Positions 5,861 through 30,204 of a stretch of 64,000 bases of DNA are shown here, piece after piece. Made by a program: the position numbers and the translations under genes. Origin of the DNA: Bugula neritina (lineage: Eukaryota; Animalia; Bryozoa); assembly GCA_964035545.1 (NCBI GenBank), contig OZ037766.1:12886722-12950721 (forward strand), read 5' to 3'. The notes beneath the pieces were generated by a model. It ran no database searches. It was not told where the DNA came from and worked only from the letters and a program-made list of their open reading frames with translations. Position 1 is the first letter of the stretch. The number at the start of each line of letters is the position of its first letter.

Positions 5861-8800
5861 ATGGAGGGGTTTATACGCCCTGACAGACCAAACTTTGGAA
5901 CAAGGGGAGATGGTATTATTCTCCGTGCAAATCATTTTAAGATCAAAGTTAAAAAGGGTTCCATACAGCACTATACTATCAAGATGCTTCCAGATAATCT
6001 ATCCAAGAGACATCGAAGGTACTGTTTGCTGTTTAATTTAAACTTATAACTCAAGTTTTCCACAAATTTATGTGTTTTGTCAGATGCATTTGCTGTCCAA
6101 ATTTGCTGTAAAATATTTATTCTCTAAGCATCCATTTTTAAAAAAATTGCATCTAAAACGTTTAAAACACTGAATTTCACTGCTTAATTGTACTTGCTTT
6201 CTGTATTTAGGAAAGTATTTGAGAAATTACTACAACTTTATTCTTCAATATTTGCTGGCCAGCTTCCAGTGTTTGATGGCATAAAGAATATATACAGTAA
6301 AGATCCTTTACCAATGATTAAGGGCAAGGTATAACAGTACTTCCTTTTGATTTATTCAGCTTCTGATACAGTTATTGATTCCCCAGGTTTTTATAATTTA
6401 AGGAACTTTGTTCAAAAGTTTGAATTGCTTTGTTTCCAGTATTTCTAGTGACCCTAATTCCACTTGTTTATGTTTTCCTGATGTTGAATGTATTAGTACT
6501 TATTTTGTACTTCAGGATCTGTTATCATTTTATAGAATTAAAATATTTCACACAAATTCAATGTATGAGTGTAAATAAAATATGATATTTTACAAATCAT
6601 AGAATAGCAAGTTGCAAGGCTGAAGAATAAATAACTGTCCCATCTGTTGATGTTTCCCTGTCTTTACTCTGGTTTATTATTGTACAGCTGGAGCTGGAAA
6701 CTTTGTTGCCTGATGATGAAAGAGTAAAAGTCACAGTCCTAATTCAATGGATCTCACAACTTAGTCTACCTTCTTTCTCTGGCTCATCAGATGAACTCAA
6801 CAATGAAATGCCATACAGTGCCATTCAAGTGTTAGATGTGATAATGAGGTATTCAGCCAGCTTGAGGTAAGTACATGTAAACTATAATATGACAAAAGAT
6901 TCTTTATAAAACTTTTAAACCATCTTTATTGTTTAAATACAATTGCACCTGTCAGGTAATTCCCTGGTTTTCTATCTGAAAATCTTTTCTCCCTTCATCA
7001 GTTAGATCTCCCTAGTAGTTGTTTTCTCTCATCTGAAGTATATATTTCGCTGTTTTGTATAAAAATAAAATATTTGCGGTTCGGAAATATAAAACCTTTC
7101 CGAACCACCAAAATTTTAAGATTGTATAAAGGTACTCAAATTTTGCATTGTTTTTAGATACACTCCAATTGGCCGATTTTTCTTTCAACCTCCAGAGAAC
7201 TCTAATCAGTCGTTGGGTGGTGGTAGGGAGGTGTGGCATGGCCATTTTCAAAATGTTCAGCTGTCTTGCTGGAAAACCATGCTAAATATGGATGTTGCTG
7301 CCACAGCGTTCTATAAAGCTCAGTCTGTTGAGAAGTTTATGATGGAGGTGAACTATGCTTATTTAGTCATATGTTACACTCTTGCTGGCAATAAATCCGC
7401 CTTCTATATTCAATCTCTGAATTTTTATACCTTCTATATTTTGCGGTTTTTTGTCTATAGTGAGGAAATTTTGAGTGCTGCTGCTCGAGAAAGAAATATA
7501 CGTTATTTGGTTGATTCTAGGTGCTGGGTATTACAGAGATGTCTCTTCAGACTAGGCCTCTTTGTGAGAGGCAGCGGAAAAAGTTTTATAAAGAGATAGT
7601 GGGCTTGAAGGTGGAAGTAACACATTCTGGGTATAAACGCAAATACAAAGTGACAGGCGTGACTAAACGCCCTGCACGCACACAGTCGTACGTATTCCAA
7701 AGTTGTTAGGTACAACTATTAGTGAGATAAGGGCATATCTGTAGTGTTTATTAGTAGATTGTCGTTGTTATTTTTTAAATAGCTGGTAAACTTCTGAAAT
7801 CTAAACTTAGCAGTATACAATGCTGCAGCTTTTATAGTTCAGTAATGAGAAAGTTCCTCATATTCCTAGTATTTATTGTCTAGGTTTCCCCTAACTCTGG
7901 AGTCTGGCCAGACTGTTGAATGCACTGTAGTTAAGTATTTCCGAGAGAAATATAATATTGAACTGGAATTTCCATACTTACCATGCCTTACAGTTGGGAA
8001 GGAGGAAAGACACACATACTTCCCTCTAGAGGTTTGTTTCTATTTTAGCAGCTGGTATTTTGTGTATTTAAGTTTCCAGGCTTATAATGAGCAGATGTTG
8101 GCTGAAGTAATTCTTATTTCTCATTAGTTCTAGTTTAGAAAGTTACTATCTTTTGAAAGATGCTTTGTGGAGTTTACTAGATGTTGCTGTAATTATTTTA
8201 GCCTAATTCAACAGTCACTCTTAGCAAATATTTTTTAAAAAGCATAAAATATTGTTTGCTTTATGAAAGCAAGTATTTGCAGGTTACTTGTTTTAAATAT
8301 CTAGACTGAAAGAGAATAAAATCTTCTTCCAAAATGTTTAGTTCTTTGTTTGGGTTGCAGCATATGCGTGTTTGTAACTTTTTAAAATTATTTGATTGAC
8401 TTTTAGAAATGATAGATGGGTGAATTGATATAAACTAATCAGAAATAGATCAATATTGATATTCTGATTCTTTTTCAGTTTATTGACTTTAAGATAAAAA
8501 GTATCAGAGTTGATTTATTTGTTGTAAAATAGTGAAAAATGGATAAATTGGCCATGTTTATGAATATTGATGTAGATATTTGAGTTGAATTGAATTGTGT
8601 AAAAATGTTTTTTGGAAACAGCTCTTGAATCATAATCTATATGGATACTTCAACAAAATAACCTAATTCCAAATTGAAGGTCAAATTTATGTTTCTTTTG
8701 ATAAGCCTAAAAATTATATATTTTGATTTTAAACTAAATTATTTCTCATATCTAGCTTACACCATTTAAAAAAATTTGTTCTAATGCATATAAATGTTAT

Positions 8801-11800
8801 AGTTTAAGTTACATTCTGAGAATTAGAAAATTATAAAAGTTGGATGCAAAAAACACTTTCTTTTAAAATAAACCCAATAAAATAGTTTCAAGGATCATAT
8901 TTAGTAACGTTGACAGAATACAGCACTTCAGGTTACTGGTTGCAGGTTTGTTCGATTGTAAAGGGTCAAAAGTGCAACAAGAAGTTAACTGACTTCCAAG
9001 CCTCTGGTATGATCAATGCGACAGCGCGCTCAGCTCATGATAGAGAAAGGGAAATTAACAACCTGGTAGGTGGTACTAAGTATGGTAGTGTTTAGTGCAG
9101 TAGTCTAAAGAACAGTATTATAGCTTCGCAGTCCTTCTTGTTATACTGTTTATTTTAAACAAATTTTCATCTTATATGATTTCAGGTGCTCCAGGCAAAT
9201 TTCAACGAAAACCCTCACCTTAGACAGTTTGATATATCTGTGAATACTGAAATGACCGAACTCAACGGACGAGTGTTGAGCCCCCCTATGATACTCTATG
9301 CGGAACCAGTAAGTTTTTGGTATTTTGGTCATCTAGTAATATAATTAACAAACTACCTAAATATGGATTTTAGAAAAGTAATCTGTCTGTGTAACTGGAT
9401 AATTTTTTGTAGAACATGGCGGAGCCGAGACGAGGAGTGTGGGATGGTAGAGAGAAACCATTCGTTGAAGCTGTAGTGATTGAAACTTGGGCCATAGCAT
9501 CTTTTGTTCCACAGGAATCGCTGGGAAGTGAAAATTTGAAGTGAGTTTTGTTAATTTATTAATTAAAAATAGCTTACACAAGTTGATAGTTTAATGGCCT
9601 TTGTCGGGTTCGAAACCATGACTTCATTTTCAAGTTATTAATTTTGCTCTTGCTAGCCTTTATAAAAATTATCTTGTAAAATTCTCCCAGCAAAAAAGTT
9701 TTAATGCAAAATAATCTAAGACCATAAATGCCATTCAACAATATTTTTTAATTTTCCAATGCATTAAATCAACTCCAACAGTTTGTTTACAAAGCACAAT
9801 GTGCTCTTTCTGTCACTGATACAAACTAAAGCTTTGATATTTTATGGAATGCAGTCATTTTCTTTTAGGAGCTTTGCATTGGAGCTTTACAGAAACTCGA
9901 GAAGTGCTGGACTGCATATAAAAAGACCTCCTAATTACAGATATGCAGATAGTGCAGAAATAGAATTATTGTTTAAGAAGCTGAAATCAGAGTTTCCAAA
10001 AATTCAACTTGTGTTTGTTGTCTTGCCTCCTAAAAACAAGATCTACGGTAAATATTGGCTGCTTAGCTAGTAATTTACATGTTAACTTATACCAAAACAA
10101 ACATTTTCTGAACTTGCACTTTCTTCTAATAAAAGCAGTCTGTTGAGTTATTGGTAGTCAGTACCTAATGGTGTTGTATTGCTTGCTGTGACCACGCTTT
10201 CTATACTTTTATAGCCGAAGTAAAGAGGGTGGCTGAGATTGTATGTGGAATAACTACACAGTGTGTGCAGCTTCAAAATGTACTCAAGCTATCTCCCAAA
10301 ACTCTTTCCAACATCTGCCTCAAAATAAATACCAAGTTGGGAGGTATTAACGCTGTTACAGAAAGAGATGCAGAGTTTGAAAAGAGGTATTTGTTCTGTT
10401 TACATGTATAATAGACTTTTGCTCACACACTAAAAAACACACACACACACATCCCATTAATTGTACTGCCCAATTTTTGTTATTTCTGCAACCAGTAGAG
10501 ACCATGTTTTTCGGCTTTGATATTATTGATACATGTCTTTGTCTTTTATAGAGGGCCTACCATATTCCTTGGAGCAGTTGTTACTCATCCTCCAGCTGGA
10601 TGCAGTCGGAGACCATCTATTGCAGCCGTGAGCACTTATGTTAATAAAACTATTATTGATTGATTTATTACACATCACAGACATAAAAAAATGTTGTGAA
10701 ATTCAGTGTAAATACTGGCTATAATAAGGTATGAACAAACTTGGGAAAAAAGGTCAGAACTGTATTGTATTCAATATCGAGTGCTGTAGTTAGTTTCTGA
10801 ATATATAAATCTATGTCATGATACTCAATGCCAAGTTTAGAGCAGTATTTGGAAATATTTCTTGTAGCCTTTTTATCGCTGGCATAGATACAAGTAAAAG
10901 TAATAGGTAGACCATACGCGGTGAGAGACATGATGAAACTGTTGAATGACATATATATTTGCTAGAGGTTTAGAGCTAAAATAGACAAATTTCTTCACAT
11001 TTGTCATTCTTCTTGATACTGTTGTAACCACTGATAAATCATGTTCCTGAAATCTCAAACTCTGATACAGCAAGGTATCTTACCATTTCATATTATTGCG
11101 TTTTAACGTATTGAGGAATAGCTTTATTTAGTAGATACTGGTTGAATTACAGGTTGTGGGTAGTATGGATGGCTTCCTCTACAGATATTTGCCTGAGATT
11201 CGACTTCAGACTAATGAAAGTGAGGTTATAGAAAACCTGGCTGATATGGTGAAAAACCTGCTTATAAAGTTCAAGATAAAAACAACCTGGAAACCAACTA
11301 AAATCATCTACTACCGCACTGGAGTGTGTGAGAGCCAGTTCAGCTATGTATGTCTACAGAAAAACTAGTAATAATTTTGCTTCAGTAATAAAAAGACTCC
11401 TTACAGCATCTTAGTAAACTAATGCTTCCATTTGGAGGCCAGATTGTGGTTAGTCTAACTGAAATAATATAGTTGTTGTAAACAAACTTTATAGTAAAAC
11501 TAAAAGTACAATGAATACTTCTTTGATTTCAAGGTGCTGAATTGTGAGGTGAGAGGTATAAGAAGGGCTTGTTTGATGTTGGAGAAAGATTACCAGCCTG
11601 GTATTACCATGATAGCTGTTCAGAAAAAACATCACACCAGGCTCTTCTGTGCTGACAAGAGAGATCAGATTGGTAGAAGTGGGAATATTCCTCCTGGTAC
11701 TACTGTTGACGTGGGAATCACACATCCTACCGAGTTTGATTTCTTTCTCTGCAGTCATGCTGGTGTCCAGGTAAATTGTTTTATCACTTGATCAATACTT

Positions 11801-12467
11801 TAAATATATCCTCATGAACTAACATTTTTAGAAACACTTTGAATTGTGTCATTTACATAAAACCAAAAGAGTAAGGCATTCTGATAGCCACTGTGTTCAT
11901 CTTAAGAGTTGAATGAATATAAATACATGGTACTGATGTACTGATGATTCTCACAGATAAATTACCTTTACAGGGTACCAGTCGACCGTCTCACTACCAT
12001 ATCCTCTGGGATGACAACAAATTCGGAGCAGATGAGTTACAAACCATGACTTATCAATTATGTTATACATATTCCATCTGCACCAGAAGTATTTCAATGC
12101 CAGCTCCTGTCTTCTATGTTCACAGCTTAGCCAACAGAGTTTGCGCATATCTGCAACACAACTACCAGGATAGGTATGTGATGGTCGGCTTCAATAATAT
12201 TGGCGTTTCTAATGTAATCCATTTGGGTTTATTGCATAATTTGATGGCTACCATGTTGCAATTGGTGATCTAAGATACAAATCTTTCGTTCCAATATTTT
12301 TGCTGCCCTATTGTCATTTCACTGCTGCTGCTCATCACTACTTCCCTTTTGCTTACAGTCCGGAAAGCAGTTACCACTCTGGAAGCGATGAGGAGATGAA
12401 TTTGGCTGAGCTGAGCAAATCTGTAATTGTTCATGATGATTTGGGGTCTTCTATGTTTTTTGTCTAA
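5861..12467 (+). CDS. Argonaute (AGO clade, miRNA-type-derived), paralog A1; 16 coding exons, predicted 832 aa; predicted non-slicer
   Basis: Exons 5861-6018, 6211-6328, 6688-6866, 7158-7347, 7521-7687, 7884-8031, 8946-9065, 9186-9308, 9413-9540, 9869-10047, 10215-10386, 10552-10627, 11153-11347, 11534-11770, 11974-12173, 12359-12467. All are GT-AG, phase-consistent and total 2499 nt. Motifs: [34 protein letters not shown]...[41 protein letters not shown]...GTSRPSHY, C-terminal MFFV*. AATAAA at 12686-12691. Confidence 0.95.
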
Positions 12468-13537
12468 CCTTCTCTCAATGATGTCTCTCTCATGACATTT
12501 CTGCAGGCTATTTTGTCTTTATAGTAATTAGTTTTATCACAGGTACTAATAACTTTCTTGTAAGCTGTATTGTTAGCAGATGCATATGCTCAGTAATACG
12601 ACTGCTATTAACACATGCTAAATGCTTACTTTTTTCTTTTAACCCAAAATATGATTTTAGTTTTCAAGTATTAGTAGGCTGCAAGAATAAAATCACTGTA
12701 AATATTCCATCAAGTTTTGCTTTCTATTTTACTCTACAGTACAAATTGTCTGAATTGCACTAAAAATATTTCATGCAAATTGAAGTGATTATGTAGTCAA
12801 TAGAAGCTCTATATAACGTACTGAATAATATTCTACAACACAAAACTTATGGAAGTAGTAAACTTTTCATTATAAAATAATCATTACCCTCATTACTGCT
12901 AACAAGAAAGCAAATAATATAAGTTGCAGTCTAAAAGGAAGTAAATATGAGGTGCAGGACACTTGATAGAGGTCTGCATTAAATTCATAGTGAGCCAATA
13001 AAAAGGTGATAAGGAAACACTGTTGCATACTTGTAATATAAACAATTTAGGACCGTTTTTTGTTACAAACTGGTCTCATATTAAAGGGAATATTCAAAAT
13101 GGCTTTCTAGATAATCGCTTTTTTATACTATATTTGAGAATGTTTCATAAAATACCTACATAATACTATATTTTATCCTCCAAATAAAATCTCTTTATTG
13201 AATGGCCACAATTGTCATTAAAAAACGACTGCCTTCGTAATTTCAATCAAATTAGCTACGTTGGGGAGACTATCAAGTTTTTCAAATACAGCTTAAAGAT
13301 CAGGCAAGGCTATCTAGCTGTCTAGTATTGTCTAATGAATTTATTGTATTTTAATGCTAGAATAGCCCATCTAGTAGATACAAGAAAAGCAAGCTTTGTA
13401 AATATAGCTTTGCAAAAGTAGCTTCTTGAAGCAGCTTTTTGGAGCACATAAAGCAAATATTTGTGGTGAATATACCAGTTACCATTTGACTGGTAAAGTC
13501 TGCTGGCGTTGTTTGAGTATTAGTTTGTTTTATAAAT

Positions 13538-14757
13538 ATGGCTTCAAGTGCCCATGCAGAGTGCAGCTTTCAGCTTGCCAAGTTTAGATGTCCTGACAGA
13601 CCATCATTGGGAAGTGAAGGACAGCCAATTTCTCTCTCAGCAAGTATTTTCCAATTGTTTTTCTCGGAACAATACATTCATCATTATGCCGTTACCATAA
13701 CTCCTGGAAACTGTCCTATTGGAATCAACAGGTATTTATTTATTCCTACTCTAATTATTTCATTGATATGCTGAGAAACTCATTCACACATGTTATATTC
13801 ATCTGTTTGTTTCCATTTGCTAAGTAGTTTTTCATACTATATTATTTGGTGAGCTGCCATTCTATAGAGTTTATAAATATAAACTCATATGGCATGTGCT
13901 AACTCACCACTGATCTATATTATGCTACAATATAAACTCACTGTTGTATTAGTATTTTTGCATGTCTTAGTGTGTGTGTTAGTGTGTATGTGCTTGTGTG
14001 TGTGGGTGTGCTTGTGTGCGTGGGTGTTGGTATGTAATTTACCTAAAGTATGTAAGTATGCATTTGTATGTTATATACATAATATATGTGATATATAATA
14101 ATATATACACACCTAATACTACATGTATAGCATATTATAAACAATACATATTTGAACATTAGGATAAAACAGAATTTCCTCTATTTAAAACTTTAGATAT
14201 TGACAGACATATTTTTTTTCTTCAAACTATAGGGAAGTAATTCAAAATCTGATCAAGAAATATTCTTCGACAATCTTTGCTGGCCAGTGTGTGGTGTTTG
14301 ATGGCAGAAGGAATATGTACAGTAAATATCCTTTACCAACTGGTAGAGGCAAGGTAATAATGTTGTCCTTTGCTATTCACGGTTGCAGGTCAATGCTATT
14401 CTAACAGGAATTGATTTAACTTTTTTCAGAAAATACAATTTTAATAAAACTAAATTCAACTTTGCAATATATGCTACTTCATTCATTTGTACTAAGTAAG
14501 TATCTGCTACAAATTTAACTTTTAATTTACTGTTATTGTGATTCACTTTCTACAAGTAGATTTACTTGTCTGTAGTTGGAACTAGAATCACAGTTAGCTG
14601 ATACAGAAGGAAATGGGGTATTCACAGTCTCTTTAATGTGGGTCACACAAGTTAGTCCGGCTGCTTTAGAAGATGTGTTGAATGGAGAGATGCATCAACT
14701 TCAACTGAATGCTAATCATGCCTTTAACACTATATTGAGGGATTTACCAAGCACTGT
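13538..14757 (+). pseudogene. Partial Argonaute B' (exons 1-3 only, N domain); truncated duplicate of AGO-B with an open reading frame, possibly 5' exons of AGO-A2
   Basis: Exons 13538-13731, 14233-14353 and 14576-14757 match AGO-B exons 1-3 with identical lengths (194/121/182 nt), no stops and intact splice sites. Similarity to AGO-B ends near 14980, inside intron 3. Confidence 0.85.
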
Positions 14758-15706
14758 GTAAGTACACCTACAGGATAGCAAATAAGAAAAACATCTACTA
14801 CCTGTTATTTAATGCAGCTCTAAAAAACCGGGTTCCTATTTATTGTGTAAGTTGGTTTTTCTCACATCAGTTAAAATATTTTACTAGATCAAGTATATGA
14901 AAAAAGGTTTCATGCAACAGCTTTTTATTTGCTATTACCTAATTGCGTAAAGTTTATCGATTTGACAAGGCTATATTTATTTTATATTTATAGGAATATA
15001 ACTGCTGACGTAAAAAGTTTGTTACCTAAAAATAATGATGCGTTTAATAATGTTGCTACACTTCCCACACAATTTGTATAGACTTTTGTTAGAAAACATA
15101 AATGCCTTGGTTATTTTCGCATCATGGTGAGTAAACTGTGTTTAATTATCAAAACACAAGGCTATATAATTTGCATAATTAATGTTATATTTCGCAAATA
15201 GTTATACTTACATTGTTTTAAATGAAATATGCGTGACCAATGTTTTCACTTGATAATAATAGTTTACAGAAAGTAGCTTATAAGCTTATAAGATGGTTAA
15301 TTACTCTCCTCACAATTGTCCACAACTAATTTTTTATTATCAAATGAAAATGAAACTAACTTTATTGTTGCAAGATGCCCTTTTAGCCTTTTTTCCTAAA
15401 CAATAATATTTTGTACTTGGCAAAAAAATGCTGCAGCTTCTTGCATTTTGATGACTTTTAACCAATTGTAATATTTGGTGCTAATTTGTCAACATGTGAT
15501 AATAAATGAAGTTAAACAGCCCATTATTGGTATCTGCACACTGTTTTGAGACTGAAATAAAATTCACAAAATGAAACCAACTTTCAACTTTAATAATCAA
15601 TTGCTGTTAGCTAAATTTATCACCCATTTACGTTACTAAATATTTGTCAAAAAGCTACACCTAATGCTGGCTTTGTTGGTGTTGTAGATCACCTAACAGT
15701 CACACA

Positions 15707-18700
15707 ATGGAGGGGTTTATACGCCCTGACAGACCAAACTTTGGAACAAGGGGGGATGGTATTATTCTCCGTGCAAATCATTTTAAGATCAAAGTTAAAA
15801 AGGGTTCCATACAGCACTATACTATCAAGATGCTTCCAGATAATCTATCCAAGAGACATCGAAGGTACTGTTTGCTGTTTAATTTAAACTTATAACTCAA
15901 GTTTTCCACAAATTTATGTGTTTTGTCAGATGAATTTGCTGTCCAAATTTGCTGTAAAATATTTATTCTCTAAGCATCCATTTTTAAAAAAATTGCATCT
16001 AAAACGTTTAAAACACTGAATTTCACTGCTTAATTGTACTTGCTTTCTGTATTTAGAAAAGTATTCGAGAAATTACTACAACTTTATTCTTCAATATTTG
16101 CTGGCCAGCTTCCAGTGTTTGATGGCATAAAGAATATATACAGTAAAGATCCTTTACCAATGATTAAGGGCAAGGTATAACAGTACTTCCTTTTGATTTA
16201 TTCAGCTTCCGATACAGTTATTGATTCCCCAGGTTTTTATAATTTAAGGAACTTTGTTCAAAAGTTTGAATTGCTTTGTTTCCAGTATTTCTAGTGACCC
16301 TAATTCCACTTGTTTATGTTTTCCTGATGTTGAATGTATTAGTACTTATTTTGTACTTCAGGATCTGTTATCACTTTTTAGAATTAAAATGTTTCACACA
16401 AATTCAATGTATGAGTGTAAATAAAAAATGATATTTTACTAATCACAGAATAGCAAGTTGCAAGGCTGAAGAATAAATAACTGTCCCATCTGTTAATGTT
16501 TCCCTGTCTTTACTCTGGTTTATTATTGTACAGCTGGAGCTGGAAACTTTGTTGCCTGATGATGAAAGAGTAAAAGTCACAGTCCTAATTCAATGGATCT
16601 CACAACTTAGTCTTCCTTCTTTCTCTGGCTCACCAGATGAACTCAACAATGAAATGCCATACAGTGCCATTCAAGTGTTAGATGTGATAATGAGGTATTC
16701 AGCCAGCTTGAGGTAAGTACATGTAAACTATAATATGACAAAATATTCTTTATAAAACTTTCCATAATCATGTTCATTGCTTAAATAGAATTGCGCCTGT
16801 GAGGTAATTCCCTGGTTTTCTATCTCAGAAATGCCCTCCCCCCAGTACCTCAGTTAATTCTCCCTTAGTAGTTGAATTCTATTATCTGAAGTAGACAAAT
16901 TTAAATTTTGCTGCTTATATGTAATCACTTATTTGCAATATTTGAAGCTTTTTTGTGTAAAAATAAAATATTTGCGGTTCGGAAATATAAAACCTTTCCG
17001 AACCACCAAGATTTCAAGATTGTATGAAGGTACTCATAATTTTGCATTGTCTTTAGATACACTCCAATTGGCCGATCTTTCTTTCAACCTCCAGAGAACT
17101 CTAATCAGTCGTTAGGTTGTGGTAGGGAGGTGTGGCATGGCCATTTTCAAAATGTTCAGCTGTCTTGCTGGAAAACCATGCTAAATATGGATGTTGCTGC
17201 CACAGCGTTCTATAAAGCTCAGTCTGTTGAAAAGTTTATGATGGAGGTGAACTATGCTTATTTAGTCATATGTTACACTCTTGCTGGCAATAAATCCGCC
17301 TTCTATACTCAATCTCTGAATTTTTATACCTTCTATATCTTGCGGTTTTTTGTCCATAGTAAGGAAATTTTGAGTGCTGCTGCTAGAGAAAGAAATATAC
17401 GTTATTTGGTTGATTCTAGGTGCTGGATATTACAGAGATTCAGACTAGGCCTCTTTGTGAGAGGCAGCGGAAAAAGTTTTGTAAAGAGATAGTGGGCTTG
17501 AAGGTAGAAGTAACCCATTCTGGGTATAAACGCAAATACAAAGTGACAGGCGTGACTAGTCGTCCTGCACGCACACAGTCGTACGTATTCCAAAGTTGTT
17601 AGGTACAACTATTAGTGAGATAAGGGCATATCTGTAGTGTTTATTAGTAGATTGCCATTATAATTTTTTGAATAGCTGCTGAACTTCTAAAATCTAAACT
17701 TAGCAGTATACAATGCTGCAGCTTTTATAGTTCAGTAATGAGACAGTTCCTCATATTCCTAGTATTACTTGTCTAGGTTTCCCCTAACTCTGGAGTCTGG
17801 CCAGACTGTTGAATGCACTGTAGTTAAGTATTTCCGAGAGAAATATAATATTGAACTGGAGTTTCCATACTTACCATGCCTTACAGTTGGGAAGGAGGAA
17901 AGACACACATACTTCCCTCTAGAGGTTTGTTTCTATTTTAGCAGCTGGTATTTTGTGTATTTATGTTTCCAGGCTTATAATGAGCAGATGTTCCCTGAAG
18001 TAATTCTTATTTCACATTAGTTCTAGTTTAGAAAGTTACTATCTTTTGAAAGATGCTTTGTGGAGTTTACTAAATGTTGCTGTATTTATTTTAGCCTAAT
18101 TCAACAGTCACTGTTAGCATTTATTTTTGAAAGAGCATAAAATATTGTTTGCTTCATGAAAGCAAGTATCTGCAGGTTACCTGTTTTAAATATCTAGACT
18201 GAAAGAGAATAAAATCTTCTTCCAAAATGTTTAGTTCTTTGTTTGGGTTGCAGCATATGTGTGTTTGTAGCTTTTTAAAATTATTTGATCGACTTTTAGA
18301 AATGATAGATGGGTGAATTGATATAAACGAATCAGAAATAGATCAATATTGATATTCTGATTCTTTTTCAGTTTATTGACTTTAGGATAAAAAGTATCAG
18401 AGTTGATTTGTTTGTTGTAAAATAGTGAAAAATGTATAAAATTGGGCATTTTTAAAAAGTGTTGATGTGGATATAATTTATTTTTGTCTTCTTTAAATAT
18501 TTGAGTTGAATTGAATTTTGTAAGAATGTTTTTTGGGAACGGCTGTTAAATCATAATCTATATGGATACTTCAACAAAATAACTTATTTCCAAATTGAAG
18601 GTCAAATTTATGTTTCTTTTGATGAGCCTGAAAATTATATATTTTGATTTTAAACTAAATTATTTCTCATATCTAGCTTACACCATTTAAAAACTTTTGT

Positions 18701-21700
18701 TCAAATGCATATAAATGTTATAGTTCAAGTTACATTCTGAGATTTAGAAAATTATAAAAGTTGGATGCAAAAAACAGTTTCTTTTAAAATAAACCCAATA
18801 AAATAGTTTCAGGGATCATATTTAGTAACATTGACCGAATAGAGTAATTCAGGTTACCGGTTGCAGGTCTGTTCCATTGTGAAGGGTCAAACGTGCAACA
18901 AGAGGTTAACTGACTTCCAATCCTCTGGTATGATCAATGCAACAAAGCGCTCAGCTCATGATAGAGAGAGGGAGATTAACAACCTGGTAGGTATTACTAA
19001 GTCTGGTAGTGTTTAGTGCAGTAGTCTAAAGAACAGTATTATAGCTGCGAAGTTTTTCCTGTTATACTGTTTATTTTTGACAAATGTTCATCTTATATGA
19101 TTTCAGGTGCTCCAGGCAAATTTCAACGAAAACCCTCACCTTAGACAGTTTGATATATCTGTGAATACTGAAATGACCGAACTCAACGGACGAGTGTTGA
19201 GCCCCCCTATGATACTCTATGCGGAACCAGTAAGTTTTTGGTATTTTGGTCATCTAGTAATATAATTAACAAACTACCTAAATATGGATTTTAGAAAAGT
19301 AATCTGTCTGTATAATCAGATAATTTATTGTAGAACATGGCGGAGCCGAGACGAGGAGCGTGGGATGGCAGGGAGAAACCATTCGTTGAAGCTGTAGTGA
19401 TTGAAACTTGGGCCATAGCATCTTTTGTTCCACAGGAATCGCTGGGAAGTGAAAATTTGAAGTGAGTTTTGTTAATTTATTAATTAAAAATAGCTTACAC
19501 AAGTTGATAGTTTAATGGCCTTTGTCGGGTTCGAAACCATGATTTCATTCTCAAGTTTAATTTTGCTCTTGCTGGCCTTTATAAAAATTATCTTGTAAAA
19601 TTCTCCCAGCAAAAAAATTCTATTACAAAATAATCTAAGACCATAAATGCCATTCAACAATATCTTTTAATTTTCCAATGCATTACAAAGCACAATGTGC
19701 TCTTTCTGTCACTGATACAAACTAATGCTTCGATATTTTATGGAATGCAGTTGTTTTCTTTTAGGAGCTTTGCATTGGAGCTTTACAGGAAGTCGAGAAG
19801 TGCTGGACTGCATATAAAAAGACCTCCTAGTTACAGATATGCAGATAGTGCAGAAATAGAATTATTGTTTAAGAAGCTGAAATCAGAGTTTCCAAAAATT
19901 CAACTTGTGTGTGTTGTCTTGCCTTCTAAAAACAAGATCTACGGTAAATATTGGCTGCTTAGCTAGTAATTTACATGTTAACTTATACTAAAACAAACAT
20001 TTTCTGAACTTGCACTTTCTTCTAATAAAAGCAGTCTGTTGAGTTATTGGTAGTCAGTACCTAATGGTGTGTTGTATTGCTTGCTGTCACCATGCTTTCT
20101 ATACTTTTATAGCCGAAGTAAAGAGGGTGGCTGAGATTGTATGTGGAATAACTACACAGTGTGTGCAGCTTCAAAATGTACTCAAGCTATCTCCCAAAAC
20201 TCTTTCCAACATCTGCCTCAAAATAAATACCAAGTTAGGAGGTATTAACGCTGTTACAGAAAAAGATGCAGAGTTTGAAAAAAGGTATTTGTTTTGTTTA
20301 CATGTATAATAGACTTTTGCTCAAACACTAAAAAAAACACACACACACACATCCCATTAATTGTACTGCCCAATTTTTGTTATTTCTGCAACCAGTAGAA
20401 ACCATGTTTTTCGGCTTTGATATTATTGATACATGTCTTTATGTTTTATAGAGGGCCTACCATATTCCTTGGAGCAGTTGTTACTCATCCGCCAGATGGA
20501 TGCAGTCGGAGACCATCTATTGCAGCCGTGAGCACTTATGTTAATAAAACTATTATTGATTGATTTATTACACATCACAGACATAAAAAAATGTTGTGAA
20601 ATTCAGTGTAAATACTGGCTATAATAAGGTATGAACAAACTTGGGAAAAAAGGTCAGAACTGTATTGTATTCAATATCGAGTGCTGTAGTTAGTTTCTGA
20701 ATATATAAATCTATGTCATGATACTCAATGCCAAGTTTAGAGCAGTATTTGGAAATATTTCTTGTAGCCTTTTTATCACTGGCATAGATACAAGTAAAAG
20801 TAATAGGTAGACCATACGCGGTGAGAGACATGATGAAACTGTTGAATGACATATATATTTGCTAGAGGTTTAGAGCTAAAATAGACAAATTTCTTCACAT
20901 TTGTCATTCTTCTTGATACTGTTGTAACCACTGATAAATCATGTTCCTGAAATCTCAAATTCTGATACAGCAAGGTATCTCACCATTTCATATTATTGCG
21001 TTTTAACATATTGAGGAATAGTTTTATCTAGTAGATACTGGTTGTATTACAGGTTGTGGGTAGTATGGATGGCTTCCTCTACAAATATTTGCCTGAGATT
21101 CAACTTCAGACTAATGAAAGTGAGGTTATAGAAAACCTGGCTGATATGGTGAAAAACCTGCTTATAAAGTTCAAGATAAAAACAACCTGGAAACCAACTA
21201 AAATCATCTACTACCGCACTGGAGTGTGTGAGAGCCAGTTCAGCTATGTATGTCTACAGAAAAACTAGTAATAATTATGCTTCAGTAATAAAAAGACTCC
21301 TTACAGCATCTTAGTAAACTAATGCTTCCATTTGGAGGCCGGATTGTGGTTAGTCTAACTGAAATAATATAGTTGTTGTAAAACAAACTTTATAGTGAAA
21401 CTAAAAGTACAATGAATACTTCTTTGATTTCAAGGTACTGAATTGTGAGGTGAGAGGTATAAGAAGGGCTTGTTTGATGTTGGAGGAAGATTACCAGCCT
21501 GGTATTACCATGATAGCTGTTCAGAAAAAACATCACACCAGGCTCTTCTGTGCTGACAAGAGAGATCAGATTGGTAGAAGTGGGAATATTCCTCCTGGTA
21601 CTACTGTTGACGTGGGAATCACACATCCTACCGAGTTTGATTTCTTTCTCTGCAGTCATGCTGGTGTCCAGGTAAATTGTTTTATCACTTGATCAATACT

Positions 21701-22367
21701 TTAAATATATCCTCATGAACTAACATTTTTAGAAACACTTTGAATTGTGTCATTTACATAAAACCAAAAGAGTAAGACATTCTGATAGCCACTGTGTTCA
21801 TCTTAAGAGTTGAATGAATATAAGTACATGGTACTGATGTACTGATGATTCTCACAGATAAATTACCTTTACAGGGTACCAGTCGACCGTCTCACTACCA
21901 TATCCTCTGGGATGACAACAAATTCCGAGCAGATGAGTTACAAACCATGACTTATCAATTATGTTATACATATTCCATCTGCACCAGAAGTATTTCAATG
22001 CCAGCTCCTGTCTTCTATGTTCACAGCTTAGCCAACAGAGTTTGCGCATATCTGCAACACAACTACCAGGATAGGTATGTGATGGTTGGCTTCAATAATA
22101 TTGACGTTTCTAATGTAATCCATTTGGGTTTATTACATAATTTGATGGCCACCATGTTGCCATGGTGATCTAGGATACAAATCTTTCGTTCCAATATGTT
22201 TGCTGCTGAATTGTCATTTCACTGCTGCTGCTAATCACTACTTCCCTTTTGCTTACAGTCCGGAAAGCAGTTACCACTCTGGAAGCGATGAGGAGATGAA
22301 TTTGGCTGAGCTGAGCAAATCTGTAATTGTTCATGATGATTTGGGGTCTTCTATGTTTTTTGTCTAA
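15707..22367 (+). CDS. Argonaute paralog A2 (tandem copy of A1); 16 exons, predicted 830 aa; predicted non-slicer
   Basis: Exons 15707-15864, 16057-16174, 16534-16712, 17057-17246, 17420-17580 (6-nt in-frame deletion vs A1), 17777-17924, 18867-18986, 19107-19229, 19334-19461, 19765-19943, 20113-20284, 20452-20527, 21053-21247, 21435-21671, 21875-22074, 22259-22367. No frame breaks were seen. Confidence 0.95.
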
Positions 22368-25300
22368 CCTTCTCTCAATGATGTCTCTTTCATGCCATAT
22401 CTGCAGGCTATTTTGTCTTTATAGTAATTAGTTTTATCACAGGTACTAATAACTTTCTTGTAAGCTGTATTGTTAGCAGATGCATATGCTCAGTAATATG
22501 ACTGCTATTAACACATGATAAATGCTTACTTTTTCCTTTTAACCCAAAATATGATTTTAGTTTTCAAGTATTTGTAGGCTGCAAGAATAAAATCACTGTA
22601 AATATTCCATCAAGTTTTGCTTTCTACTTTACTGTGTACAAATTATCTGAATTGCACTAAAAATATTTCATGCAAATTAAAGTGATTATGTAGTCAATAG
22701 AAGCTCTGAATAATATTCTACAACACAAAACTTATGGAAGTAGTAAACTTTTCATTATAAAATAATCATCACCCTCATTACTGCTAACAAGAAAGCAAAT
22801 AATATAAGGTGCAGTCTAAAAGGAAGTAAATATGAGGTGCAGGACACTTGATAGAGGTCTGCATTTAATTCATAGTGAGCCAATAAAAAGGTGATAAGGA
22901 AATACTGTTGCATACTTGTAATATAAACAATTTAGTACAGCTATTTTACAAACTGGTCTCATATTAAAGGGAATATTCCAAATGGCTTTCTAGCTAATCG
23001 CTTTTTTATACTATATTTGAGAATGTTTCATAAATTACCTACATAATACTATATTTTATCTTCCAAATAAAATTTCTCTATTGAATTGCCATAATTGTCA
23101 ATAAAACCGCCAGCTTTTGTAACTTCAATCAAATTAGCTACGTTGGGGTGACTTTCAAGTTTCTTACTGTTATGCACTTTTCCAAATACAGCTTAGAGAC
23201 TAGACATGGCTATCTAACTGTCTAATATTGCCTAATGAATTTATTTTATTTTAATGCTAGAATCACCCATATAGTAGATACAAGAAAAGCAAGCTTAGTA
23301 AATATAGCCTTGCAAAAGTAGGTTCTTAAAGCAGCGTTTTAGAGCACATAAAGCAAATAATTGTGATGGAGATACCAGTTATTATTTGACTGGTAAAGTC
23401 TGCTGGCGTTGTTTGAGTATTAGTTTGTTTTATAAATATGGCTTCAAGTGCCCATGCAGAGTGCAGTTTTCAGCTTGTCAAGTTTAGATGTCCTGACAGA
23501 CCATCATTGGGAAGTGAAGGACAGCCAATTTCTCTCTCAGCAAATATTTTCCAATTGTATTTCTCGAAACAATACATTCATCATTATGCCGTCACCATAA
23601 CTCCTGGAAACTGTCCTATTGGAATCAACAGGTATTTATTTATTCTTACTCTAATCATTTCATTGATATGCTGAGAAACTCATTCACACATGTTATATTC
23701 ATCTGTTTGTTTCCATTTGTTAAGTAGCTTTTCATACTATATTATTTGGTGAGCTGCCATTCTATAAAGTTTATAAATATAAACTCATGTGGCATGTGCT
23801 AACTCACCACTGATCTATATTATGCTACAATATATACTCACTGTTGTATTAGTGTTGTGTGTGTGTGCGAGTGTGCGAGTGTGCTATATACATACTATAT
23901 GCAATATCTAATAATATATACACACCTAATATTACATGTATAGTAGGTATCTTATAAAAAATACATATTTGAACATTAAGCAAAACAGAATTCTAAAATT
24001 TAGATATTGAAAGACATGTTATTTTCTGCAAACCGTAGGGAAGTAATTCAAAATTTGATCAAGAAATATTCTTCGACAATATTTGCTGGCCAGTGTGTGG
24101 TGTTCGATGGCAGAAAGAATATGTACAGTAAACATCCTTTACCAACTGGTAGAGACAAGGTACTAATGTTGTCCTTTGCTATTAACGTTTGCAGGTCAAT
24201 GCTATTCTAAAAATACAATTTTAATAAAATTAATTTAAACTTTGCAATATATTCTACTTCATTCATTTGTACTTTAAGTGCGTATCTGTTATAACAAATT
24301 TGATTTTTAATTTACTGGTAATGTGATTCATTTTCTACAAGTAAATTCACTTGTCTGTAGTTGGAACTAGAATCACAGTTACCTGATACAGAAGGAAATC
24401 GGGTATTCACAGTTTCTATAAAATGGGTCACACAAGTTAGTCTGGCTGCTTTAGAAGATTTGTTGAATGGAGAGATGCATCAACTTCAACTGAATGCTAA
24501 TCATGCATTTACCACTATATTAAGAGATTTACCGAGCACTGTGTGAGTGCACCTACAGGATAGCAAATAAGAAAAACACCTACAACCTTTTTAGGGCCAT
24601 CCTATTTATCATATAGAGTAGTTTTTCTCACATTAGTCAAAATATTTTACTAGATCAAGTATATAAAAACTTAAACAGCTATAATGCAACTGCTTTCTAT
24701 CTGCCATTAATGGTGTAAAGTTTATAACTTTAAAAAAGCTGTATTTATTAAATTTTTTTTACAAAATAAACAGCAATTGTTTTGAAATAAGCAAATACAA
24801 GGCGATATGCAACAATAACATAGCTTTCTCCTTGGAAAGGTAGAGTTCACTTTTTAATATTTTTCATAAAAAAAGCATTAGGCTTTGTTTTTCTTATTGA
24901 GGATTTCTTAGTTGCTCATTTCTGTACACTACTCATAATACTTATTACAAGTTTGATAATAATATCCCAAAGTATCCCCTCGCCCTTTCCTAGTTACACT
25001 TCTGTCTCTTTTCCTAGTGACACTCCTTTTCGTGAATGTTTCTTTCTACCCCTGAGGAGATGTGAAGACTCCATGGGTTTTGATAGGAAGGAATTGTCTG
25101 TCTGCCACCAAACTGTCAAGTCATGTATTTGGAAGCCAATGGTAAACATAGATGTGTCAAATGCAGTGTTTTATAAAGTACAGCCGGTTTTGGAATTCTT
25201 AGAGGAGGTAAAACACATGCCTTTATAATATTTATAAAACCATGCATTTCTGCCTTAATCTATAATACATGTGCTAGTGATATACACACACATGCTTCCC

Positions 25301-28300
25301 ATTTCAATTTAAACAAAGTATTACTTTCAGCTTTGTTCTTGTCTAAAGGTTGGTTACTCTACTACTGATTGGAAAGATAAACACTATTCTTTTTAAAGTA
25401 CACTGAGCTATGATAATGAATTTTTCATTCTAATGTATGTTTTGTCCATGGAAATATTGTTTGTTTGGTGGGTTTATACAGGTATTGCAGATTCCACATC
25501 TGGCCAGCCATGCTTTGCCCTTGACTGCAGCTCAAAGAGCTAAGTTCTGTAAAGAGATAAAAGGTTTAAAAGTGGAGGCAGCTAATACAGAGTTTAGGCA
25601 GAAATACCTAGTAATAGATGTTACTAATCTGCCTGCATTTACACAACCGTATGTATTGTAAGAATATCAGGTGAATTCAGCTTCTGATTTGAAACTACTT
25701 TCAAGTTTCTAAAGCTAGTTATTAGCATTTTTAAGAATATTGAAGCTTTTACTAGGTTTTTTTGATTCTGAAACTTCTTTTACTAGATTTAAAAGCCTTT
25801 AGTTTAAAACAAAGTTTTTCAAAAAAAGCTCATGAAAATGATGAAAAAGTTTATATTATCTTATGCAAATAATGTTTGACTCTTTGGTTACTCAGAATAT
25901 TTTCTCTCATCAAAGTTGGATATTCCATGTCACCATCAGCAGCAGCAGCAGCTATCATTTTAGTGTCACTCATTGCTGAGAAGGATTTCACTCTTTTCTG
26001 TTCTTTTCACTATTTCTGTGCTTTAGGTTTCCAATGCCAATTGGAGAAGAAACTGTTGAATGTACTGTGGCACAATATTTCCAATACAGATATAAAAACG
26101 AACTTCAATTTCCACATTTTCCATGCCTACAAGTTGAATGGAAGCAAAAACAAATATATTTTCCTTTAGAGGTTTGTATCATATGTGACTTTTGATCTGT
26201 CTTATAGTAAAAAACAGTTCTTGGCATAGGCCACAATCTGTTGTGTTGACAGATGTAATATATTTTCTATGCCTAAAACCAAGCGATAGCAGAAATATTT
26301 AGCTATAGGTTTATTTGCTCTGCATTGCCAATTATTAACATCTATTCCAGGTATGGTGTTCCTGATTCAATTTGTTGACATTTTTGTACTTGTCTGCAAT
26401 TAAAGATATAGTTTTTGACTAATTTGTTCATGTTGTCTTTTATCCAGCCTAATGCAATAATCTGTTAAACAAGTTTTTCAAAATTACTTTTGTTTTCTAA
26501 CAATTTTGCAAATTAATGTATAAAGATGACTTTTCTTTAGGTATGCTGCATTGTGGATGGTCAGAGGTGCATCAAGGAACTTACTGGGCAGCAAAATTTG
26601 CTTAAAGCCACAGCCGGTTCAGCCCCTGATACACAAAGTGATATCAACAATGAAGTAAAGAATATATTTCGCTGGCTGTGGCAACTATCACTTTGTAAAC
26701 TGAAGCACATGCTTGTATCGGTGTATTATAAGTATACTAGTAATCGTTTTTGTACCGGATATAAGTAGCTTGCAATTTTGCTTGTCAAATATTTTGAACT
26801 TACTATACTAGGTCTTTAAATGTTAGCTGCAAGGTTTTGTGGTTTACCAGTAAAGTTATGGAGCAGGTTACTCAATTTCAACTTTTTTGGGATTACATGA
26901 GTAGTAGCAAAAAAGTTCACTTATAAGCTAAATACACTAGATTTATTTCTGAGAACAGTCCATTTGTTCTCATAGACATTAAAAATTAAATGTGGTTGCA
27001 GATGGCGGTAGCTAAATTCAACCATGGCTTACTGCAGTTTGGTATATTTGTGGGTGATAAAATGAGAGAAGTACAGGGGCGAGTGTTGAGTCCCCCTGCT
27101 ATACTATATGGTGGAAAGGTGAAGTATCAGGTCTTTTTAAAATTTCTGTAATTCACTTGCTTTTGATGCCTTATTCCTACTTTTTAAAATATCATTGGCT
27201 TTGTGATACTTAAATACACATAGCTTTTGTACATAACTATCATGCCGTTTTTATATGAAATAGTTGCAATTTTTGCAGACAGAAGCATTGCCTATTCAAG
27301 GCACGTGGGATATAAAGAATAGAAAGTTGTTTGCTGGCATTAGGATTGATGTGTGGGCTATAGTGTGTTTTGTTCCTTCAACATCAATGGAAATTGGCAT
27401 GTTGGTGTAGGTTTACAGTTTAAACTCGCTGTGGCATTCATATTGCAACTTCCTATAGAATGATCACTGTTTAGTGTCATTATAAATTTGACATTTATAA
27501 TTTTAATTTAAAATAAGCTGTTTTTTCCAGTTAATAGGAAGGAACATGTTTTAATGGAGTCAAAGCAAACCTGTAGGTAGGTAGGTAGGTTAAAGTTTGT
27601 ACACACCCTTCTGCAACTTGTCTAAATAATATAAATATAGCAAAAGCCTGCATATTCCTTCCATTCTTAAACAAAACTAGTGTCCTTTTGAACAGATTCT
27701 TCCCGCTCAACTATATATGTAATATTTTAGTTATTCTTATGAATTTCAGACTAATTATATTTTCATTATAGAGAATTTACTAATCAACTCCACCTTGTCT
27801 CAAACAAACTTGGAATGCACATAGTAAGAACTCCTTGCTGCTGCCAATACGCATCTAGACCAGAAGAGGTTGAACCCTTGTTTCAACAGCTGATAAATAG
27901 ATATCCATCACTTCAACTTGTGTGCGTTGTGGTCTCTTACCAATCTCCAGTCTATGGTAACAGCTACTTTTTAGCTAATTGCTATTATGTTACAAGAATA
28001 CCCCATTTAGTCCCATAACATTTCCTGTTGTAACTCTATTGTCGCAGAACTTTCCTCTTCCGGTTTTGGAGTAGGTCTTAAACTTTTATAAGAATATTAC
28101 AACCACCCCCAGCTGTAACTCTTGGTTTTAGAGCAGCAGGTTTCAAACTATTGTAAGAATATTACAATCTCTTGCCACTTTGTTTATTAAGGCACTTGTA
28201 AATATTTATTAGAAATTGCTAAGTTAATTCAATATGCATATGCATATATTATGTAATTCATCATTTCATGCAACCTAACATATTCTGTTGCTTATTAAAG

Positions 28301-29288
28301 TTGTGCTGATCTATTTTAGTGTACACAGTTATCTTAGCAGATGGGTAAATTTATTTCAATGACTTTTTCACCAAAATACTAAAACAATTCTCCACGACTG
28401 CATTGCTTTCTGAATATATATAGCATACCAGTTATTAGACACACTTAGCAGTTTGTTTGAAGTTTGATTAGATAGTCTTCATGCGATTTTCATTTTTTTA
28501 GCTGAAGTTAAAAGAGTAGGTGACACTGTAGTTGGATTGGTTACACAGTGTGTACTTTCCAAAACTATTCATAGCTTATCTCCACAAAGACTCGCCAACA
28601 TCTGTCTCAAAATAAATACCAAACTTGGTGGGGTCAACAACATTCTACTACCCAGCATCAGGCCAAGTGTATTTGAGTAACTATTAATACTATTTATTTC
28701 CTTAATTGTGTGTTCTTCCATGTTTGTTACAAGTCGTAAATGTGAATTATTTTCTCGATCAAAATGTTTGAGTAAAAAACTTGTATACTATATTTTGCAT
28801 TTTCCTAGTGATCAGACAAAATATAGTTTAAAATATTTTTGCGATTTTATAGTATTAAGAGAACATTTTACTTGTTTTATTGGTATGTTTTCAACTGCAT
28901 GCGATATCTATGAAATGGGTATAGAGTTTTCTTAAATTAAATAAACACTATCTTGGAATTTACCATAAGGACATAGTAATATATTTAGCATATAATTTAT
29001 TTTTATTCGCCTAAATTGTATAGAGTATTTTCTGATATAGAATATATTTGATATTATTTTCTTAATTTGATTCATTTATAGAAAACCTGTGATCTTTTTT
29101 GGAGCTAATATTAACCACCCGCATGTTGAAGGCCTTGACGAAGTAGCCATTGCAGCTGTAAGTTTTACTTATGTGTCTTGTTTGACATTTCTCACAACCA
29201 AATTTGGCTATTTTTCTTGCTTATTGAGCTACTTATATTGCAAGTGACTGTAGTTATGTTCTAATTGCTAGGCCATTGAAAAATAATT

Positions 29289-29360
29289 GCCCCCACTGGG
29301 AATCAAACCCTAGACCTCTGGCTTGCAAGCAAGTGTGCTAACCATTACACCACAGGGACC
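29289..29360 (-). mobile_element. tRNA-derived SINE head or tRNA pseudogene in AGO-B intron 12
   Basis: Minus strand reads GGTCCCTGTGGTGTAATGGTTAGCACAC...GGGTTTGATTCCCAGTGGGG. It has an A box and a degenerate B box (GTTTGA), but poor acceptor and anticodon stems. Confidence 0.65.
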
Positions 29361-30060
29361 ACTGGGTAAACTTGTCACTACAGCCATATTAAACAGATTT
29401 GAACTGTGCTGTTTTAGGTTGTGGCTAGTATAGATGCCCACCCCTTTCGCTACTCCTCCACTGTGTGGGTCCAGAAGAATAAGCATAATATTATAGAAGA
29501 CCTGGCTGGTATGGTTAAAAAGCTGCTTATATCTTTCTACATAGCTACCAAGTATAAACCACATAGAATTATCTTCTACCGAGCTGGAGTGTGTGAAAGC
29601 CAGTTTAGTCAGGTACGTCTTCCAAAAGACGAGAAATAATTACTTCAGTGTTAAAATGACTGGTTACAACATTTTAGAAATTTAATAATTCCATTTGGAG
29701 ACTAGGTTGTGGTTAGTTTAACTGAAATAATATAATTGTAAAACACGTTATAGGGAAAATCTGCTAGTTTTTTTTACTAAAAGTACAATGAATACTTTTG
29801 GTATTTCAAGGTGCTGAATTATGAGGTGAGAGCTATAAGAAGGGCTTGTTTGATGTTAGATATAGAATACCAGCCTGGTATTACACTAGTAGCAATTGAC
29901 AAAAAGCAAAATATACAACTTTTATGTGCTGACAAAAACAATGAAACTGGCGAAGGTCGTAACATACCCGCTGGTACAACTGTGGACTGCGGAATCACAC
30001 GTCCATCTGTGTTTGATTTCTTTCTCTGTAGTCACAGAACTGCACAGGTAAAAACATCCT

Positions 30061-30204
30061 ACTATTTTCTGCAGTTGTATGCTCTATTCTGCAGTTGTAT
30101 GCTCTATTCTGCAGTTGTATGCTCTATTCTGCAGTTGTTTGCTCTAGTCTGTGATTGTTTGCTCTATTCTGCAGTCCTCTGCTCTACTTGGCAATTGTCT
30201 ACTC
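30061..30204. repeat. 20-bp minisatellite (gcagttgtatgctctattct), about 7 copies decaying toward the 3' end, in AGO-B intron 14
   Basis: Directly visible tandem units. Confidence 0.95.

Follow-up and report, generated by a model that had tools for sequence, protein, structure and literature searches.

A partial tandem duplication in an Argonaute gene cluster of Bugula neritina places an open N-domain gene fragment upstream of an Argonaute gene copy

Does a tandem duplication in an Argonaute gene cluster of the bryozoan Bugula neritina create a chimeric Argonaute, or has it left an ordinary gene fragment in front of a second gene copy? The stretch in question, hereafter called the window, comprises 64,000 nucleotides of contig OZ037766.1 in assembly GCA_964035545.1 (positions 12,886,722 to 12,950,721 of the forward strand; G000:C2:12886722-12950721). 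The host genome is AT-rich and 216 Mb in size, and all genes treated here lie on the plus strand. Open stretches, single-exon Pfam matches and exon-by-exon tblastn with a paralogue, Z, place the Argonaute genes of the cluster in the order Z, A1, B', A2 and B, in which B' consists of the first three exons of a B-type gene and stands upstream of the A2 gene body. An earlier note on this DNA proposed that alternative splicing from B' into A2 could yield several Argonaute architectures, either with two tandem N domains or with the N domain of A2 exchanged for that of B'. The in-frame geometry of B' and A2 stands, but the yield of several forms is put in doubt by an exon-like segment that would intercept the B' frame, by relaxed constraint on B' and by the apparent decay of A2 in a related taxon. 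The account favoured here, with a probability of roughly 0.55, is an ordinary partial tandem duplication, patchily maintained by gene conversion, in which B' would be a leftover 5' gene fragment.

Self-comparison of the window reveals a tandem duplication with a unit of 9.86 kb. Positions 5116-13956 match 14978-23856 with 93.7% identity over 8957 columns, and positions 14066-14989 match 23879-24757 with 82% identity. One breakpoint falls in intron 3 of B and the other about 745 nt upstream of the ATG of A, so that the breakpoints lie in or beside two different genes, as in fusion genes born by partial tandem duplication. The B' exons (13538-14757, +) precede the A2 body (15688-22367, +) on the same strand, which is the layout of a fusion gene. 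Homology between the regions upstream of A1 and A2 begins at 5116 and 14978, and no second copy of the sequence upstream of 5116 was found in the self-comparison of the window; A2 is indeed devoid of everything that A1 has beyond this point, as had been noted. In a three-way alignment, B' tracks intron 3 of B up to about 14975-14985, followed by a few T/A bases common to both parents and then by A1-upstream sequence, and the switch point lies only 10-18 nt before the AG at 14992-14993. B' is a copy of its parent truncated within B intron 3, in the manner of a pseudogene fragment.

The same junction exists in a related taxon (sp2). A protein search with B' exon 3 retrieved an open reading frame (ORF) of 61 residues, P0001, on two metagenome contigs of the Joint Genome Institute (JGI) from two samples, L007 and L008, whose names include AY690838, under which the Bugula neritina mitochondrial genome is deposited. 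L008 spans the 3' end of A1, B' exons 1-3, the junction and the region upstream of A2, and L007 extends from B' exon 2 across the junction to A2 exon 7. Their BLAST identity with the window is 78-90% by segment, with substitution distances of about 0.10-0.15, and both the order of B', junction and A2 and the position of the junction are the same in the two contigs and the window. Because the same junction is found in independently assembled contigs, the duplication predates the split of the two taxa. The earlier note had named a haplotype mis-assembly as a finding that would undo its proposal. No observation was found in favour of an assembly artefact at the junction, such as a tandem placement of two haplotypes, and it is extremely improbable when the same junction occurs at the same position in two contigs assembled independently from other samples. 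Furthermore, the window contains no N, and the duplicated copies differ by 3-30% with many indels and a patchy identity profile, which is the pattern of paralogues shaped by conversion. On these comparisons mis-assembly of the junction is excluded, and the duplication is to be regarded as genuine, evolutionarily old, partial and tandem, within a four-gene Argonaute cluster.

The two taxa differ in the fate of A2. In the window, exon-by-exon Pfam matches give A2 the domain order of the AGO clade (ArgoN, ArgoL1, PAZ, ArgoL2, ArgoMid, Piwi). Its exon cores are all open, the only indel relative to A1 within them is 6 nt long and in frame, and the ratio of nonsynonymous to synonymous divergence (dN/dS, omega) between A1 and A2 is 0.34. 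Derived replacements number 4 in A1 and 9 in A2, with 14 unpolarised, and show no clear asymmetry. Fixed differences between the two genes include position 15704, which is C in A2 and A in A1. The A2 orthologue on L007 has at least four disruptive deletions, among them 79 nt in exon 3, 121 nt in exon 4 and 16 nt in exon 5, and has lost the acceptor and the first codons of exon 6. Judged from this single contig, A2 of sp2 is a pseudogene while B' upstream of it is still open, and L007 does not present both halves intact together in a relative that shares the junction. Because A2 is broken and B' intact in sp2, the integrity of B' in that taxon is not owed to a chimeric Argonaute.

The B' exons are open, begin with ATG and carry GT/AG at all five splice sites. 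Each of them matches ArgoN (PF16486), and together they cover profile positions 1-142, which is the whole ArgoN profile; exon 3 has only three genomic matches, namely B' itself, B and Z. No stop, no indel and no loss of the ATG or of any of the five splice sites was found in B' in the window or on L007 and L008, which agrees with the earlier statement that B' has kept its open frame and all its splice sites and extends it to the relative. In a neutral simulation run on B exons 1-3 read in one frame, 10-25 random substitutions left the ATG, the stop-free frame and the splice dinucleotides all in place with a probability of 0.17-0.49. The open frame alone is therefore uninformative.

Gene conversion offers a further source of integrity. 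From exon 1 to intron 2, the distance p between A1 and A2 is 0.028, whereas L007 differs from A2 by 0.120 and from A1 by 0.115. B' exon 1 together with the first part of intron 1 differs from B by 0.03, and exon 1 differs by 0.108 between species. Because copies within the genome are closer to each other than to their counterparts in the other taxon, and the duplication is older than the split, A1 and A2 have been homogenised since the split. These distances indicate that gene conversion is active in the array and that it can refresh B' from B without selection on B'. A separate expectation, that the edges of the repeat unit should be older than its centre, holds only in part. The A-side edge fits it (about 0.3 between A1 and A2, 0.13 between species), but the B'-side edge is no more than a fast-evolving intron (0.19 within the genome, 0.22 between species).

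The amino-acid changes in B' point to relaxed constraint. Pairwise Ka/Ks between B' and B is 0.36. When the 14 amino-acid differences are polarised with Z and A, 9 are clearly derived in B' (exon 1 V14A, N36S and K44E; exon 2 K26R; exon 3 P8A, R14G, I20L, K21M and L28P), none is clearly derived in B and 5 stay unassigned; several of the B'-derived changes fall on residues common to all paralogues. A metagenome scan with B exon 3 for a full-length B of the relative gave no confirmed match, and exact-product look-ups with the other ORFs of L007 and L008 gave no new contig. Because no full-length B of the relative was found, the branch analysis of the window and sp2 B' sequences takes the window B as outgroup, with P denoting the neutral probability of as few nonsynonymous changes as observed or fewer. 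The window B' branch carries 5 synonymous and 11 nonsynonymous changes (omega about 0.6, P 0.25), the sp2 B' branch 9 and 16 (omega about 0.5, P 0.07), and the branch of B plus stem 6 and 3 (omega about 0.14, P 0.004). Omega is significantly below 1 on neither single B' branch. By these counts B' is under relaxed constraint, being about four times less constrained than its parent B.

A fusion of B' with A2 is arithmetically possible. For each acceptor, the frame was read locally with the final two bases of B' exon 3 placed in front of it. This exon ends in phase 2 at a strong donor (ACTGT/GTAAGT), and the joint 14757>15688 into A2 exon 1 is in frame and has no stop, so that coordinates and frame are as previously described. 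The alternative joint 14757>17057 into A2 exon 4 is also in phase and stop-free. The joint 14757>14994 meets a TAG at 15079-15081 after 29 codons, in line with the caveat already given that inclusion of the candidate exon 14994-15126 would leave an N-domain-only peptide, and unspliced read-through from exon 3 meets an immediate stop (TAA 14759-14761). The series of intron phases 2,0,2,0,2,0,... is common to A1, A2 and B, as had been claimed, and it is shared because these genes are paralogues. The A2 leader between the acceptor at 15688 and the ATG is 19 nt long, with an acceptor-like AG in A1, A2 and sp2 alike. The chance of a fitting phase over such a leader is 1/3, and its six stop-free codons are likely anyway; on these odds the in-frame relation of B' to A2 is no more than chance.

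The frame between B' and A2 depends on the candidate exon. This segment has a normal T-rich acceptor and a donor (CATG/GTGAGT) that matches the consensus at 6 of 7 flanking positions, a fit as good as that of the confirmed introns of the cluster, and both sites are kept in A1, A2 and L008. Its body is poorly conserved, with about 70% identity between A1 and A2. In sp2, two different but overlapping deletions are found in it (L007:775-930, L008:2660-2830) on contigs that are otherwise identical across B'. The deletion in L008 removes 51 nt, sparing the donor but not the TAG, and that in L007 removes 70 nt with both TAG and donor, so this stretch appears unstable or unconstrained in sp2. What is left of the candidate exon in L008 (82 nt) has no stop in the B' frame and closes in phase 0; continued into the following exon, the frame gives I-T-stop, 10 nt upstream of the A2 ATG. 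With the candidate exon included, the frame ends before A2 in both taxa (at the TAG in the window, at a TAA in the sp2 leader); skipping alone keeps it open, and the 14757>15688 frame is also open in the relative. The 5' regions of A, B and Z have no detectable similarity to one another and provide no confirmation of the candidate exon. Instead of being an exon, the segment may contain the start site of A. The candidate exon ends in ATG in A1, A2 and L008 (window 15124-15126), and joining this ATG to 15688-15696 would create a three-codon upstream ORF, M-I-T-stop, that ends 10 nt before the main ATG and may be regulatory or due to chance.

As to transcription, splice choice and promoter use, we infer the following course of events. 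The duplication would have set a copy of the B promoter region and the N-domain exons 1-3 in front of A2, and the open frame and splice sites of B' would have been kept largely by time and by conversion from B rather than by a role in a fusion protein. Should B' be transcribed, ordinary exon definition would pair the donor of exon 3 with the first competent acceptor downstream, at 14994. The frame would then end, giving an N-domain ORF of about 195 codons whose stop lies upstream of many exon junctions, in an mRNA prone to nonsense-mediated decay (NMD). Expression of A2, if any, would probably start from the proximal sequence duplicated along with it (15316-15700). For the double-N form one good exon, and for the N-swapped form four, would have to be left out in splicing, so that either Argonaute would be a minor isoform at best.

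Against B' being a mere leftover stand, first, three weak hints that it is not wholly neutral. The two B' branches combined give an omega of about 0.53 (27 nonsynonymous to 14 synonymous changes; one-sided P about 0.04). The B' exons contain 0 indels, while the flanking introns show 11 gap events in the paralogue comparison and 6 between species, for which P(0) is about 0.03-0.04, and both taxa have kept the ATG, the frame and five splice sites. A2 is intact in the window and, given the A1/A2 omega, is probably expressed; were the true first exon of A to lie upstream of 5116, A2 would depend on the B' promoter. That A2 is a pseudogene in sp2 is read from one short-read metagenome contig, and within B' conversion has been demonstrated for the 5' part alone, in the window genome. 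Conversion from the constrained B can produce all three weak signals (omega, indels and integrity), and some weak coding constraint may still act on B'.

The same signals would also be expected if B' were a small gene of its own, composed of exons 1-3 and a terminal piece from 14994, that encodes an N-domain protein of about 195 residues under weak purifying selection and could, for example, modulate Argonaute loading. Its ATG, frame and splice sites are intact in two taxa even though in one of these the gene that follows is inactivated; its exons are free of indels, compared with 6-11 gap events in the introns, and omega is about 0.5 and not 1. In addition, the ORF ends at a near-equal length in both taxa (29 or 30 further codons), and AATAAA at 15501 and 15556 could terminate such a transcript. 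However, the replacements affect residues conserved in Z, B and A (exon 3 L28P, I20L/K21M, P8A), neither single B' branch has an omega significantly below 1, gene conversion from B accounts for the integrity, and the tail-encoding segment is unconserved, with its two different deletions in the relative. To our knowledge, no stand-alone eukaryotic Argonaute N-domain protein has been described. An independent B' gene is a tentative alternative, the most probable of the rival readings. The same standing applies to the broader proposition that B' is an expressed coding unit, open in at least two bryozoan taxa, that would serve either as such an N-domain protein (about 195 residues) or, with 14994-15126 skipped in the window species, whose A2 is intact, as the additional N-terminal module of a double-N Argonaute.

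For the double-N form itself, B' exon 3 would have to be joined to A2 exon 1, which would yield a functional Argonaute about 1000 residues long, its N domain present twice in tandem. The open 14757>15688 frame in the window and the relative fits this form, as does the intact state of B' and of A2. It requires skipping of a segment with good splice sites, and the N domain of B' is losing conserved residues. Because the A2 of L007 is broken, B' and A2 show no joint conservation as coding sequence. From 1.84 billion cluster representatives, the B' exon-3 search returned, besides P0001, four spurious repeat proteins and no long chain with exon-3 sequence, which is a weak test of the chimera in a protein library that holds only ORF-level calls for this clade, without spliced models. 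Protein homologue searches with the A2 exon-1 stretch and with P0001 returned nothing more within a length window that left out full-length proteins. A search for sequencing runs gave no RNA run and a single match, X1, in which 0.81 of the words sampled across a largely intronic stretch were present, so that it is probably DNA. We know of no Argonaute in nature that has a doubled N domain. The comparative evidence leans against a functional B'-A2 chimera, and the double-N Argonaute is accordingly improbable. An exchange of the N domain, in which B' exon 3 is spliced to A2 exon 4 and replaces the N domain of A2, deserves still less credence. Phases match, the frame is open, and the exon 3/4 boundary coincides with the boundary between the N and L1 domains; but splicing would have to bypass four segments in between, each with normal splice sites, the joint codon would be Val where A2 has Arg and Z is basic at the aligned end of exon 3, and every argument against the double-N form applies as well.

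The B' promoter could instead matter for A2 without any fusion protein. In this case it would drive A2, with the B' exons as a long 5' leader, and the A2 ATG would be reached by leaky scanning or re-initiation, or the leader would be removed. A2 has lost everything upstream of 5116 and yet is intact, with its omega of 0.34 against A1, and the acceptor-like AG 19 nt before the ATG in A1, A2 and sp2 would suit such a leader. Chimeric structures produced by tandem duplications are known to change expression in Drosophila (PMC5460883). The leader mRNA would, however, be a target of NMD, and the A2 proximal upstream block lies within the duplicated segment and is conserved. Re-initiation after an ORF of about 195 codons is inefficient. 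A literature search for bryozoan spliced-leader trans-splicing returned chaetognath papers only. The cross-species distance p of the upstream block is 0.111, compared with 0.148 for introns (Fisher P = 0.06), and it has 3 gap columns in about 373, compared with 192 in about 2240 for introns. These values are suggestive of a proximal promoter or 5' untranslated region (5'UTR) duplicated together with A2. The earlier suggestion that A2 depends on the B' promoter is thus not upheld, because the conserved 370 nt upstream of A exon 1 were duplicated too and leave room for a promoter of A2's own; control of A2 by the B' promoter is unlikely, though less so than a chimeric protein. An interferon-stimulated response element (ISRE)-like motif in this block, GAAANNGAAACT at 15346, occurs once in the window, was equalled in 33 of 100 shuffles and has no exact match in A1, and it is not significant. 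The coordinates of the features are collected in Table 1.

Table 1. Positions of the duplicated copies, the junction and the Argonaute gene parts in the window
Feature	Position	Strand	Basis
Copy 1 of the repeat unit (A1 and B')	5116-14977	+	Self-comparison, identity profile
Argonaute gene A1, ATG to stop	5861-12467	+	Open exons, tblastn with Z fragments, intron model
B' exon 1, ATG 13538, ends in phase 2	13538-13731	+	Pfam, open frame; ATG and donor kept in L008
B' exon 2, ends in phase 0	14233-14353	+	Pfam, open frame; splice sites kept in L007 and L008
B' exon 3, ends in phase 2, donor GT at 14758	14576-14757	+	Pfam, open frame; orthologous ORF P0001 on L007 and L008
Duplication junction, B intron 3 to A-upstream, with a short T/A-rich stretch common to both parents	14975-14989	.	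Three-way alignment; same in L007 and L008
Copy 2 of the repeat unit (A2 and full-length B exons 1-3 with part of intron 3)	14978-24757	+	Self-comparison, identity profile, three-way alignment
Candidate A2 5'UTR exon; acceptor AG 14992-14993, donor GT 15127, B'-frame TAG 15079-15081	14994-15126	+	Exon use putative
A2 proximal upstream block in the duplicated segment, possible promoter or 5'UTR	15316-15687	+	Conservation (suggestive only)
A2 exon 1, acceptor-like AG 15686-15687, ATG 15707, ends in phase 2	15688-15864	+	Pfam, intron model
A2 exon 2	16057-16174	+	Pfam, intron model
A2 exon 3, ends in phase 2, end of N domain	16534-16712	+	Pfam, intron model
A2 exon 4, ArgoL1 (PF08699, 3e-15)	17057-17246	+	Pfam, intron model
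Rest of A2: PAZ, L2, MID and PIWI exons to stop	17420-22367	+	All exon cores open
Full-length parent gene B; frame-shifting deletion near 30405-30412 (about 7 nt)	23438-31517	+	tblastn with Z fragments

The genes of the cluster differ in how far they have departed from canonical Argonautes. Z, the fourth Argonaute, lies 10-18 kb upstream of the window (G000:C2:12869579-12876479; window-relative -18100 to -10100; L004, L006). It is much nearer to canonical microRNA (miRNA)-class AGOs, and its exon structure is common to A1, A2 and B. At the first catalytic Asp of the DEDH tetrad, the only tetrad position compared, Z has an intact GADVTHP, whereas A1 and A2 read GAVVTHP and B reads GANINHP (window 10502-10630, 20402-20530 and 29077-29160); A2 has lost this Asp, and the loss differs between A and B. 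The tetrad is required for slicing but does not define membership of the AGO clade. In the last large PIWI exon of B (30380-30480), the deletion of about 7 nt makes the frame read ...LTYQLCHTF and then stop, and the conserved continuation lies in another frame, while A1, A2 and Z are continuous at this point. B may be a recent pseudogene or may encode a protein truncated at its C-terminus. A1, A2 and B have the same exon structure as Z and the domain order N-L1-PAZ-L2-MID-PIWI of AGO-clade Argonautes such as human AGO2; unlike canonical AGOs, A and B lack the first catalytic Asp and evolve fast, and B is frameshifted.

Around these genes lie a second gene type and several repeats. Downstream of the cluster, window 33400-40500 (+) contains a gene of several exons that has a P-loop AAA_25 domain of helicase type (PF13481; exons 37295-37615 and 39351-39584) and looks like a Twinkle/DnaB-type helicase. 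Window 42300-64000 is occupied by a very large 99-nt (33-codon) tandem repeat array with higher-order periods of 198 and 375, arranged in blocks and strongly AT-skewed; the array is probably a minus-strand coding gene for a repetitive product rich in Ser, Thr and Glu. Similar translated stretches at window 3437-3616, upstream of A1, and 36701-37057, in the region of the helicase gene, are probably copies of a dispersed repeat. Between Z and A1 (L005, window-relative -5900 to -4180) there is a simple repeat of trinucleotide type, about 1.7 kb long, which is open in all three plus-strand frames as poly-L, poly-Y/C and poly-T/A.

Compared with known systems, the B'-A2 case is ordinary for tandem gene families. 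The concerted evolution of A1 and A2, with p = 0.028 within the genome versus 0.12 across taxa and with patchy identity, has nothing unusual about it, and here it also gives a function-free explanation for the intact B'. B' resembles unprocessed pseudogene fragments as a truncated 5' copy with relaxed amino-acid constraint but, unlike them, has no stop, frameshift or lost splice site in two taxa. As in the chimeric genes formed by tandem duplication in Drosophila (Rogers, Shao & Thornton 2017, PMC5460883), the breakpoints lie in or next to two genes, and the 5' exons and promoter region of the downstream gene stand before the copy of the upstream gene on the same strand. In contrast to those chimeras, B'-A2 is known here from DNA alone, an intervening segment with splice sites would break its frame when spliced in, and its partners are paralogues, so that a fusion would repeat or swap a domain without creating a new domain combination.

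The N domain of Argonaute takes part in duplex unwinding and loading. A B'-A2 fusion, if true, would be a natural experiment in Argonaute domain architecture. The locus as it stands is a well-documented example of a familiar process, in which a partial tandem duplication has outlasted a species split and parts of it have been homogenised by conversion. Of the gene copies, A2 has survived intact in one lineage and degenerated in another, and a 5' fragment has stayed open with no clear sign of a function. For a young, conversion-prone fragment of this kind, function is only weakly supported by an open frame and unbroken splice sites.

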